DNA from: Octopus sinensis
Taxonomy: Eukaryota
Length of the DNA: 64,000 bases
NCBI RefSeq assembly: GCF_006345805.1
Contig: NC_043010.1
Location: 66,340,001-66,404,000, forward strand
Reading direction: 5' to 3'
Part shown: positions 41,401-53,385 of the stretch, one piece after another
Layout of the letters: the number at the start of each line of letters is the position of its first letter
Numbering within the stretch: position 1 is the stretch's first letter
Notes under the pieces: model-generated
Told to the model about the DNA's origin: nothing
The model's database searches: none
Seen by the model: only the letters and a program-made list of their open reading frames with translations
Program-made: the position numbers and the translations under genes

Positions 41401-44400
41401 ATTGAGATATTAATGATGTGATTGTTTATTTTTTAGAATGACATAGTAGGGTAGGTGTAAGAGGCCTGATTGGGTCAATTTGAACGTAAAACATGTAGAA
41501 AGATTGGGCTGGATTTGGCCTTGCAACTGGTTAACAGAATGAGCAACCATATTGTCATAATTGGGGTCAAAGTTGATCAGTTGAGAGACATTTAGGACCA
41601 AGAAGCAGCATTATTTCTTGTAGTGAAAAAAAAAAAAAAAAGTAAGATTTTGTGAAGATTTTGAGAAGATGTTTTCTTTGAACGGAATAATATATAATAT
41701 AATGAAATTATTGTATACAGTGCTCAGGTGCACCACAACTTGTCAGAAAGTGCATATAAAGTACATGCAGTAATGTAGAAATGTCTGGAAAGCGAACAAT
41801 GTATGAGTCAGATACATGCTTGTGTGTGTATGGAGGGAGAAAATCAAGTGTAGTGTTGGCGAATCTCAGGAAGCATGGAAGTTTTGAAGGATGCAGTGCT
41901 CCGACAACTAACAACTGATGCTGGCAGTTTGTTCCATGCTTCAGCGACTCTCAGTGTGAAAAAATGTTTCCTGAAGTCATGGGAGCTGTGCTGTTTTCTG
42001 ACTTTGTAAATATGTCCACGGGTGTTAGATGGGTGGAGTTTGAAAAAGGTGCTCAGAGTTATTGTTTGTGCGATGGTTGATAATTTTATGGGTGTGGTGA
42101 CGGTTATTTCGGTTAATCAAGAGGGTGGGCAATTAGATTGTTTCTGCGATTACATCTAATACACACTTTCTTTCAGAGTACTCCTGATTTGAATTGTTCC
42201 CTAAACAGTTCACGAAAACGCATACGATCTCCTCAACATAATGATTCAACCTCCAAAACTACAGGAGAAGATGAAGATGTAAATTCAATTATCACTTGTT
42301 TCTCTCTTTTGTTCTGCTTGCTTGATTTAAAAAAAATTTTTTTTTTGTATTCTATTTCCTTTTCTCTTTGCCTCGGCAAAGTTCGAAACCAAAAAAAAAA
42401 AAAAAAAAAAAAAACATGCTCAAAGAATATTCTGTATTCTCTCCCTCATTGTCCTTTTTGTTTTTTTTAAAATTTGGTTTTTACTCAGGAAGAAGGAATT
42501 GTGTCCAGGATCTTCACTGACCCTATGAGATGGGTGAAATTGGTGCAGCCAAGGTTCAGGCTGTGCAGCTGCGACTTTGACATTTAGGAAAGAAGGGAAT
42601 TCCCGAGAGTGAAAAGTTCTGAGAGGGGGAGAATTGGCAGAAGAGTTAGTTTAGGAAGTCTGAGAGAAAAGACACGTAATGAACAAAGAGAGGAGATGAA
42701 CCTGTCAGACTTCAGTCATCATCATCATCATCTTCTTCATTATCTTCTTCTTCTCCTTCTTCCTCCTCTTCTCCTTCCTCCTCTTCTCCTTCCTCCTCTT
42801 CTCCTCCTCCTCCTCTTCTCCTTCTCCTCCTCCTCTTCTTTCTTCTTCTTCCTCTTCCTCCTCCTCTTCTCCTTCCTCTTCTTTCTTCCTCTTCTTCTCC
42901 TCTTCTTCTCCTCCTCTTCTTTCTTCTTCCTCTTTCCTCCTCCTCTTCTCCTTCCTCTTCTTCTTCCTCCCCCTCTTCTTCTTCTTCCTCCTCCTCTTCT
43001 TCCTCTTTCCTCCTCTTCTCCTTCCTCTTCTTTCTTTCTCCTCCTCTTTCTCTCTTCTTCTTCTTCCTCCTCTCCTCCTCTTCTTCACCACCACCACCAT
43101 CATCCATCCATTCATTCATTTTGTATGTTGGTGTAGGCTGGATGGTTTGACAGGATCTGTTGAGCTGCAGGGATGATGTGTCAAGTTGGCATGGTTTCTT
43201 CAGCTTGATTCCTCTTTCTAATGTCAACCAGTTCACAGTGTGTACTGGGTGTTTTTTCTCGTGCCACCACGACAAGTGAGGTTAACAAATAACTTGCAAG
43301 GAGTTAGCAAACAACTAACTGTGAGGAAGAGAGGCTATTGTAGTAGTAGTGGTTTTTTTTTTTCTTTTCTTCCCCACTTCCCATGGAATTTTTAACCCTT
43401 TAGCATTTAAACCAGCCATATCCGGCCAGAAGTATTCTGCCTGTTTTATGTCCAAACTGGCCACATCTGGTCTCTTACAACAACCCTACAATATCGTCTT
43501 AAAAATTAACAGCTACCTCATCATAATCTCATAGCTACAAGATAATGCATGATTAGTTCAAAGCAATGTGGATAAAAAAGGATTAATTTTGGCAGAATAA
43601 TGCGAACACTAAAGGGTTAATTCATTTTGAAATGGTTGAAGTAGCTGAATTTTATGAATTCCAATTTCAAAAATGTAAAGTTTATAATATTGATTACAAA
43701 TAACATTGGAACAAAAGGGAAATAACGAGATTTCAAATTTGGAACCTGCTTTGGAATTTCTTTTGTTTTCTTTGTGGCCATATTGACTACAGTCAATAAG
43801 GCGGGACGAGCTGGCAGAGACGTTAGCACGCCGGGCGGAGTGCTTCGTGGTATTTCGCCCGTCGCTATGTTCTGAGTTCAAATTCTGCCGAGGTCGACTT
43901 TGCCTTTCATCCTTTCGGGGTCGATAAATTAAGTACCAGTTACGCACTGGGGTCGATGTAATCGACTTAATCCGTTTCGTCTGTCCTTGTTTGTCCCCTC
44001 TATGTTTAGCCCCTTGTGGGTAATAAAGAAACACATATTGACTACTGTACTTATCTCAGGATGATGGAAAGTTGATCTGGGTAGGATTCAAATGCAGAAT
44101 GTAAAGGGATGTAACCAAACACCACTAGGTATTTCATCTGATACTCAACTGGTTCTGCCATCAACCTCTTGAATTTCTGGGACTTTTTATTTATTCATTT
44201 AGATTAGCAAAAATTCACAAATTTATTTTTGAAGTCAAACACCATGGTTAAAGGGTAGGGTTTACTTTGTGATTGAGTAGAGAGGTTTAGTGTATTATTA
44301 GATGGTGGAGAGCTAAGAAATGAAGGAATAATACCATGGAAGTTAATGGACACACTTTCAAAACACTGTCTCGGAAGTGTTCTACTCACTGAGTGAATGG

Positions 44401-53385: not shown

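Follow-up and report, generated by a model that had tools for sequence, protein, structure and literature searches.

Background

Tandem exon duplication with alternative use of the copies is a general phenomenon, and the exon arrays of Dscam are used in a mutually exclusive manner. In vertebrate PAPα, a poly(A) polymerase (PAP), two signals for nuclear localisation (NLS1 and NLS2) flank a region rich in serine and threonine (S/T) (PMC8191758, PMC6309179). Splicing of the last exons of its gene, PAPOLA, gives the forms PAP I, II, IV, VIII and IX, and intronic polyadenylation gives the truncated forms PAP III, V and VI (PMC6309179). NLS2 is bipartite, two of its lysines (656-657) are SUMO-conjugation residues, and it has been reported as required for nuclear localisation of the enzyme (PMC10908868). 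Here we describe a PAP gene of Octopus sinensis whose regulatory tail contains six paralogous exons in tandem. The gene lies on a 64,000-nt stretch of contig NC_043010.1 (assembly GCF_006345805.1, positions 66,340,001 to 66,404,000, forward strand), which we call the window and to which the coordinates refer unless another locus is named.

Six paralogous exons in a canonical poly(A) polymerase gene

The exons of the gene were located with the guidance of a human PAPOLA sequence, and the splice junctions were then enumerated. This guide sequence served as no more than a lead, since the NLS2 lysines fall at 662/663 in its numbering, 6 residues away from the published 656/657. In an exact-sequence look-up, the resulting model (Table 1) proved to be the same protein, without a single residue differing, as XP_029644864.1 ('poly(A) polymerase beta isoform X1 [Octopus sinensis]'). 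It contains the Pfam domains PF20750 (PAP_NTPase, 4.8e-79), PF04928 (PAP_central, 4.6e-69) and PF04926 (PAP_RNA-bind, 1.6e-24), and over residues 8-498 it matches the PDB structures of human PAPγ (4lt6, 8e-215) and bovine PAPα (1q78 and 1f5a, about 5e-209). It also carries the motifs GADID (at residue 106) and GIELDM (at residue 158), and its catalytic part is 60-70% identical to that of vertebrate PAPs. By its domains, the gene is therefore a canonical eukaryotic nuclear PAP of the PAPα/β/γ type.

The tail of the model has the metazoan order, i.e. a basic NLS1 region, an S/T-rich region, an NLS2-type module and a conserved C-terminal peptide. We found the same order in the aligned mollusc, annelid, hemichordate and vertebrate PAPs, in agreement with the published layout (PMC6309179, PMC8191758). 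The basic region encoded by exons 15-16 is probably the equivalent of NLS1, judging by its position relative to the S/T-rich exon as in PAPα (PMC6309179, PMC8191758); the alignment with PAPγ 4lt6 reaches residue 497, which is up to this region. The C-terminal ending RL(K/T)L(K/N)(R/K) is common to mollusc, annelid, hemichordate and vertebrate PAPs.

The six repeat exons A-F are exons 18-23 and lie between the S/T-rich exon 17 and the last exon. All are of phase 0-0 and together they contribute 200 aa. Each is preceded by a polypyrimidine tract and an AG, and frame 0 is the only open frame. The copies recognize each other in tblastn comparisons within the window with E = 4e-5 to 1e-20, and no seventh or degenerate copy was detected there at E < 0.01. 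In a self-comparison of the region from 40 to 54 kb, the similarity between copies was limited to the exon and 10-100 nt of flank, the longest stretch being B and D with their flanks (238 bp at 85.7%). Beyond these flanks the introns are unrelated and share only scattered interspersed repeats. A-F are thus adjacent paralogous exons of like length and phase with their own splice sites, as is characteristic of tandem exon duplication.

Two other, independently made assemblies, those of O. bimaculoides and Argonauta hians, contain the same array with diverged introns, which makes three assemblies in total. Because of this, and since the similarity is confined to the exons and short flanks, we ruled out a recent assembly duplication as its source. 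A first-pass annotation of the window had already considered such an artefact unlikely. It had also named the gene a poly(A) polymerase, listed six stop-free, phase 0-0 exons of 99 or 102 nt with AG/GT sites, proposed a repeat consensus, and placed the additional 200 aa between the S/T-rich linker and the conserved C-terminus. The complete gene model bears out the exon coordinates exactly and the size and place of the insertion; the alignment of the copies shows the consensus to be correct, and the Pfam domains and the match to PAPγ 4lt6 support the identification of the gene.

Table 1. Features of the Octopus sinensis PAP gene, in coordinates of the window
Feature	Position	Strand	Length	Description
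PAP coding region, complete	17285..53385	+	2577 nt, 858 aa	24 coding exons, from splice-junction enumeration
Exons 15-16	34830-34899 and 36353-36431	+		Probable NLS1-equivalent basic region, end of structured part
Exon 17	38127..38483	+	119 aa	S/T-rich linker, phase 0-0
Repeat exon A	42177-42278	+	102 nt, 34 aa	Type 1, degenerate; donor GTAAAT
Repeat exon B	44507-44605	+	99 nt, 33 aa	Type 1; donor GTAAGT
Repeat exon C	47069-47167	+	99 nt, 33 aa	Type 2; donor GTAAGT
Repeat exon D	48326-48424	+	99 nt, 33 aa	Type 1, one residue apart from B; donor GTAAGT
Repeat exon E	50118-50216	+	99 nt, 33 aa	Type 2; weak donor GTAACG
Repeat exon F	51796-51897	+	102 nt, 34 aa	Type 2; donor GTAAGT
Last coding exon	53287..53385	+		Conserved PAP C-terminus (...VPELTSP...), then stop codon

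The repeat unit resembles NLS2

Each repeat exon encodes one module, in which a basic cluster is followed by S-P, about 10 residues, (S/T)-P, a second basic cluster and an acidic end. In position and motif, this unit matches the conserved bilaterian pattern "KRxxSP...(S/T)P-K(K/R)xK". By inspection and a simple pattern search, we found at least one copy of KR(P/S)HSP...TPPKR(x)(K/R) at the same position of the tail in vertebrate PAPγ and in nemertean, brachiopod, annelid, gastropod, bivalve and chiton PAPs. Examples are TKRSHSPSIDGTPKRLKDIEK from a vertebrate PAPγ, PKRPHSPGHHGTPPKRYRDED from a nemertean, SKRPHSPTLETIGTPPKRCRE from an annelid, SKRPGSPFHNDTPPKKSKELE from a gastropod and SRKREGSPVRPDSPVKRSKS from a bivalve PAP. 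These comparisons, and all our statements on homology, are based on PAPγ and invertebrate sequences from the databases and not on the PAPOLA guide sequence. Since both its position after the S/T-rich stretch and its motif match vertebrate NLS2, the repeat is best read as an amplified NLS2-type module. This identity of the unit had not been recognized in the first-pass annotation and is added by the present analysis.

The copies fall into two subtypes. Type 1 comprises A, B and D together with the first and third copy of squid, and type 2 comprises C, E, F and the second squid copy. The canonical bipartite NLS pattern, (K/R)(K/R)-X10-12-(K/R) at 3 of 5 positions, is found in two of the six Octopus copies only, B and D (as RK-x12-KKIKE in B), and A, C, E and F fail it. 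The monopartite pattern K(K/R)x(K/R) occurs twice each in B and D, once in A (KRIR) and in none of the type 2 copies. Exon A has kept RKRIR and two S/T-P sites, but it has lost the downstream basic cluster and has no full consensus site for cyclin-dependent kinases (CDKs). Using the definitions of full and minimal CDK sites from PMC10908868, we counted 17 S/T-P sites in A-F, five of which are full CDK consensus sites (TPKK twice, SPPK three times). B and D carry TPKK, which in B is joined by two further SP sites. The type 2 copies have three S/T-P sites each, SPPK and two minimal S-P sites, and no canonical NLS. A-F thus form a cluster of S/T-P-X-K/R and S/T-P sites of the kind that defines a CDK-regulated tail at the sequence level.

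In Argonauta, the type 2 copies have lost even the KR pair. Three elements are invariant across all copies of all species: the central S-P, the (S/T/I)-P/K...K element and the acidic end. Because the NLS pattern is absent from four of the six Octopus copies and the KR pair from the type 2 copies of Argonauta, import cannot be the selected function of every copy.

Purifying selection and probable homogenisation of the copies

We compared the window with the corresponding loci of O. bimaculoides and Argonauta hians. In A-F, 9 of the 600 nt (1.5%) differ between the two Octopus species, compared with about 6-11% mismatches and many indels in the 200-nt intron flanks (binomial p = 4e-9), so that exon divergence is about 4-fold below intron divergence. 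The S/T-rich exon 17 differs at five synonymous and no non-synonymous sites in the same species pair. Between Octopus and Argonauta, only the exons and about 10 nt beside them can be aligned. For B, D, E and F, the Nei-Gojobori method gave a synonymous divergence (dS) of 1.09 and a non-synonymous divergence (dN) of 0.10, hence dN/dS = 0.09; B and D combined are the most constrained copies (dN/dS = 0.04). The array is maintained by strong purifying selection. A dN/dS of 0.09, together with exons that can be aligned where introns cannot, indicates that the exons encode a constrained peptide.

B and D differ at 5% of nucleotides within Octopus and at 6% within Argonauta, but at 16-18% between the two (dS 0.21, 0.28 and 1.33, respectively). 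C, E and F differ from one another by 12-13% within Octopus, and from their positional counterparts in Argonauta by 22-38%. The paralogues, above all B and D, have most likely been homogenised within species by gene conversion. This is the simplest reading of the distances because the order B-C-D-E-F is the same in both genera, although, in sequences as short as these, independent duplications may also have produced the likeness of B and D. Since the split of O. sinensis and O. bimaculoides no conversion is visible, as orthologues are closer to each other than paralogues are.

The intron flanks of exon B (44307-44506 and 44606-44805) show 2-4% mismatches with O. bimaculoides, and those of the other repeats 6-8%. 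In this small sample, better-conserved flanks of B would be typical of a regulated alternative exon.

Annotated isoforms and transcripts

Seven isoforms of the O. sinensis gene are annotated in RefSeq, where X-isoforms are automated models. X1 contains all six repeat exons (ABCDEF), and the others lack B (X2, A-CDEF), E (X3, ABCD-F), A (X4, -BCDEF), C and D (X5, AB--EF), D and E (X6, ABC--F) or A and B (X7, --CDEF). For O. bimaculoides, the five RefSeq isoforms X1-X5 are ABCDEF, A-CDEF, ABCD-F, -BCDEF and --CDEF; models from 2015 are ABCD and A-CD, and each of these continues into the intron that follows D. The O. vulgaris model is -B--EF. All seven O. sinensis isoforms retain F and at least one of B and D, and F is also retained in the RefSeq isoforms of O. 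bimaculoides and in the O. vulgaris model. The annotated forms thereby range from 4 to 6 modules, 11 to 17 S/T-P sites, 3 to 5 CDK consensus sites and 1 to 2 canonical NLSs.

From the annotation, the repeat exons appear to be used as cassette exons in Octopus. Since all of them are symmetric, skipping leaves the reading frame intact. The first-pass annotation had calculated up to 64 skip combinations and had suggested that the length of the tail is tuned by splicing. The exons are indeed symmetric in-frame cassettes, but 64 is a theoretical number and seven combinations are annotated. At the level of annotation, tuning agrees with the skipping of A, B, E, A+B, C+D and D+E.

Direct RNA evidence for the skipping of a repeat comes from a decapodiform. 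Two transcript contigs from one sequencing project, L005 (811 aa) and L007 (778 aa), are 99.95-100% identical outside one deletion, and this deletion is clean, in frame, 99 nt long and exactly the first repeat. A protein search with the tail alone gave no match at E <= 1e-3. As the database does contain the identical protein, this result is not evidence of absence and is probably due to a limit of word-candidate selection or to the compositional filter. A search with the C-terminal half retrieved the clusters already known and added no Octopus transcript fragments.

Some further models deserve mention. In the stretch 48425-48670, a transcript that bypasses the donor of exon D would remain open for 20 codons up to a stop, and two AATAAA hexamers are found 3' of this stop, at 48654 and 48662. 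The older O. bimaculoides models A0A0L8FHE2 and A0A0L8FI44 end in exactly this read-through, which suggests an intronic-polyadenylation isoform without E, F and the conserved C-terminus. The O. vulgaris entry CAI9733264.1 (1176 aa) is a C2H2 zinc-finger protein (first ~405 aa) fused to a PAP without A, C and D. The window does not encode these N-terminal 405 aa with the zinc fingers, so the entry is probably a merged gene model, and this part was discarded. A 181-aa 'kinase' that clustered with the PAP isoforms was discarded as well; it is not encoded in the window.

Copy number across animals

Using a profile built from the cephalopod repeats, we counted the copies in PAPs of other animals. 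There are six in both O. sinensis and O. bimaculoides, five in Argonauta hians and three, in the subtype order 1-2-1, in two transcript sets from decapodiforms, one of them from Sepia esculenta (runs SRR19578105 and SRR25097170, identified in PMC9538352 and PMC10571815). The PAPs of chiton, gastropods and bivalves contain one significant profile copy at the same position of the tail. Counting by pattern and inspection gave three copies in Crassostrea gigas and C. virginica and two in Mytilus, Ptychodera and some teleost PAPγ. The copy number of Octopus is the highest among the PAP sequences retrieved. The array is at least as old as the split of Octopus and Argonauta, and a three-copy array is expressed in decapodiforms.

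No counterpart of exon A was found in Argonauta, where the corresponding intron holds no A-like reading frame. At the place of exon A, in the intron from exon 17 to B', the Argonauta hians locus carries a tandem repeat (13706-14195) with about 94-96% identity between its copies.

Five teleost PAPγ sequences and Ptychodera flava carry two KRPHSP...KRxK modules, and in Alosa PAPγ the upstream motif 'GSTIPTVVG.SVIP' is duplicated too. The repeated modules of teleost PAPγ and Ptychodera flava look like independent tandem duplications of the same region, and so do those of oysters and mussels, because the repeats resemble each other within each lineage. As the module has been duplicated in other animals, its amplification is recurrent and the Octopus architecture is not unique.

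The first-pass annotation had called for copies to be counted in relatives, had regarded the tail as lineage-specific and had been aware of no described PAP with this architecture. An array of three to six copies is indeed found in coleoid cephalopods, with the highest number in Octopus, but it is not restricted to Octopus (five copies in Argonauta, three in decapodiforms), and the module is duplicated also in oysters (three in Crassostrea), mussels (two in Mytilus), Ptychodera and teleost PAPγ. We likewise found no paper on an octopus or cephalopod PAP that describes the array, in literature searches of which one may have missed the spelling 'poly(A)'; the full model, however, is already public as XP_029644864.1 with isoforms X1-X7. 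The sequences and isoforms are thus known from RefSeq and the catalytic core is ordinary, while the amplification of the NLS2 module, its two subtypes and their concerted evolution appear to be undescribed.

Possible function of the array

Taken together, we consider it probable that an ancestral NLS2 module was amplified into a constrained, cassette-spliced and homogenised array that may tune import and/or phosphorylation. B and D would then act as redundant bipartite NLSs, and Octopus tissues would make the repeat-skipping isoforms in regulated proportions. By analogy with vertebrate PAPα, the S/T-P sites may be phosphorylated by CDKs or mitogen-activated protein kinases (MAPKs), and the number of modules may tune the efficiency of importin-dependent nuclear import. 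Module number could also, or instead, tune the threshold of a multisite CDK/MAPK phosphorylation by which the activity of PAP is controlled over the cell cycle.

Several points weigh against this proposal. Cassette use in Octopus is known from automated RefSeq models and not from spliced reads, and protein searches gave no Octopus transcript contigs covering the tail. Both the import and the phosphorylation role of the tail are argued by analogy, and the canonical NLS pattern is missing from all copies but B and D. Gene conversion was deduced from distances over very short sequences (99 nt). The equivalence with NLS2 of PAPα rests on position and motif, and the PAPα sequence used in that comparison was the one whose numbering is off by 6.

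It is possible, though we think it the less probable course of events, that the array was selected as a platform for multisite phosphorylation and protein binding (an SR-like 'RSRSP' and S/T-P cluster), with NLS1 sufficing for import and the NLSs of B and D being ancestral baggage. Conservation in every copy of every species is confined to the columns of the central S-P, of (S/T/I)-P/K...K and of the acidic end and does not extend to the basic clusters, and the type 2 copies and exon A are conserved even though they fail the NLS patterns. The vertebrate PAP tail, too, is under the control of multiple CDK sites and binds splicing factors (PMC6309179, PMC10908868). On the other hand, B and D, in which the bipartite pattern is intact, are the copies under the strongest constraint (dN/dS 0.04), at least one of them is present in every annotated isoform, and the module sits at the position of vertebrate NLS2, which is reported to be needed for nuclear localisation (PMC10908868). 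A role as a platform and a role in import overlap and are not mutually exclusive.

That the exons are constitutive, and the RefSeq isoforms artefacts of automated modelling (misaligned reads, or proteins projected between paralogous exons), seems improbable. B and D differ by 5% of nucleotides, so spanning reads can be mis-mapped, and the isoform sets of the two Octopus species are alike, which could reflect a bias of the shared pipeline. However, the skipped exons A and E have no near-identical paralogue (12-37% nucleotide distance to every other copy), and independent JGI-style models of O. bimaculoides from 2015 also occur with and without B. The de novo decapodiform contigs differ by exactly one repeat exon, and the symmetry of the exons makes skipping harmless to the frame. 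It is very improbable that the disordered tail merely tolerated a neutral expansion with no function, or that the copies stem from an assembly duplication. Such an origin would fit a low-complexity, disordered tail whose copy number varies by lineage, and the dN/dS of about 0.4-1.5 among the type 2 paralogues within Octopus, a value from very few sites. It is contradicted by a dN/dS of 0.09 at saturated dS between Octopus and Argonauta, with exons conserved where introns are unalignable, by the roughly 4-fold lower divergence of exons than of introns between the Octopus species, and by the presence of the array in three independent assemblies with diverged introns.

A more far-reaching version of the import and phosphorylation model, which we regard as speculative and rather unlikely, is that coleoids turned a single module into independent cassettes maintained by conversion. 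The choice among many of the 64 combinations, according to tissue or stage, would then set the nuclear/cytoplasmic partition of the enzyme and the cell-cycle sensitivity of polyadenylation. If it were true, it would amount to a code of dosage imposed on a core enzyme of mRNA processing, and this in a lineage already known for diversification at the RNA level.

If the proposed function holds, the gene offers a natural experiment in motif dosage, in which one enzyme carries 4-6 import/phosphorylation modules. One could then ask how nuclear import, and the mitotic or meiotic control of polyadenylation, depend on how many NLS and CDK sites are present. More generally, one module the size of an exon has been duplicated repeatedly in the PAP regulatory tail of several animal lineages, and in octopods its copies show signs of concerted evolution.

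Introns and flanking sequence

The intron after exon 8 (25695/25696) is of the GC-AG type, with the donor GCATGT. It is the sole in-frame join of exons 8 and 9 and gives FSKW|SWPQPVLLK, as in RefSeq and in other PAPs. The introns of the repeat region contain an inverted repeat (40257-40485 versus 43392-43620, 90%), a direct repeat (43809-44037 versus 52108-52335, 89%) and palindromic stretches (46200-46515 and 51450-51583). The inverted and direct repeats are copies of short interspersed elements, some of which are absent from the orthologous introns of O. bimaculoides. The gene spans 36 kb in O. sinensis, 24 kb in O. bimaculoides and 15 kb in Argonauta, and much of this difference is due to interspersed elements in introns.

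Outside the gene, positions 1-17000 and 53400-64000 are dense in low-complexity tracts and in TA/CA microsatellites, which translate as YIYIYI/HTHTHT. The part of the window upstream of 17285 yielded no PAP coding exon, and no protein-coding neighbour was identified in 1-17000 or 53400-64000.

Comparison with known systems

The octopus tail shares with that of vertebrate PAPα and PAPγ the order NLS1, S/T-rich region, NLS2 and conserved C-terminus. The PAPγ module cited above is similar to the octopus unit in motif, in tail position and in its S/T-P sites, including a full CDK consensus. The vertebrate PAPs among the matches listed mostly have one module, whereas the octopus has six, each on its own symmetric exon and in two subtypes. 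In Crassostrea, Mytilus, Ptychodera flava and teleost PAPγ, the same module is tandemly repeated in the same part of the tail, but in fewer copies.

As in vertebrate PAPOLA, the isoform diversity of the octopus gene is located in the C-terminal tail, and the catalytic part is constant (PMC6309179). The possible read-through form of exon D resembles the truncated vertebrate forms PAP III, V and VI. The alternative exons of PAPOLA are not paralogous to each other, however, while the octopus cassettes are repeats of one module, so that splicing would alter the dosage of a motif and not swap sequences. The octopus gene can be classed with the alternatively spliced C-terminal regulatory tails of canonical PAPs, and it is a tidy but modest exon amplification.

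With Dscam-type arrays, the octopus array has in common adjacent paralogous exons of equal length and phase, and a local duplication that appears to feed alternative splicing. The two differ in how the copies are used and in what they encode: Dscam-type exons are mutually exclusive choices for a segment of a folded domain, whereas the octopus exons appear to be independent cassettes, several of which are included together, and each encodes a short linear motif in a disordered region.

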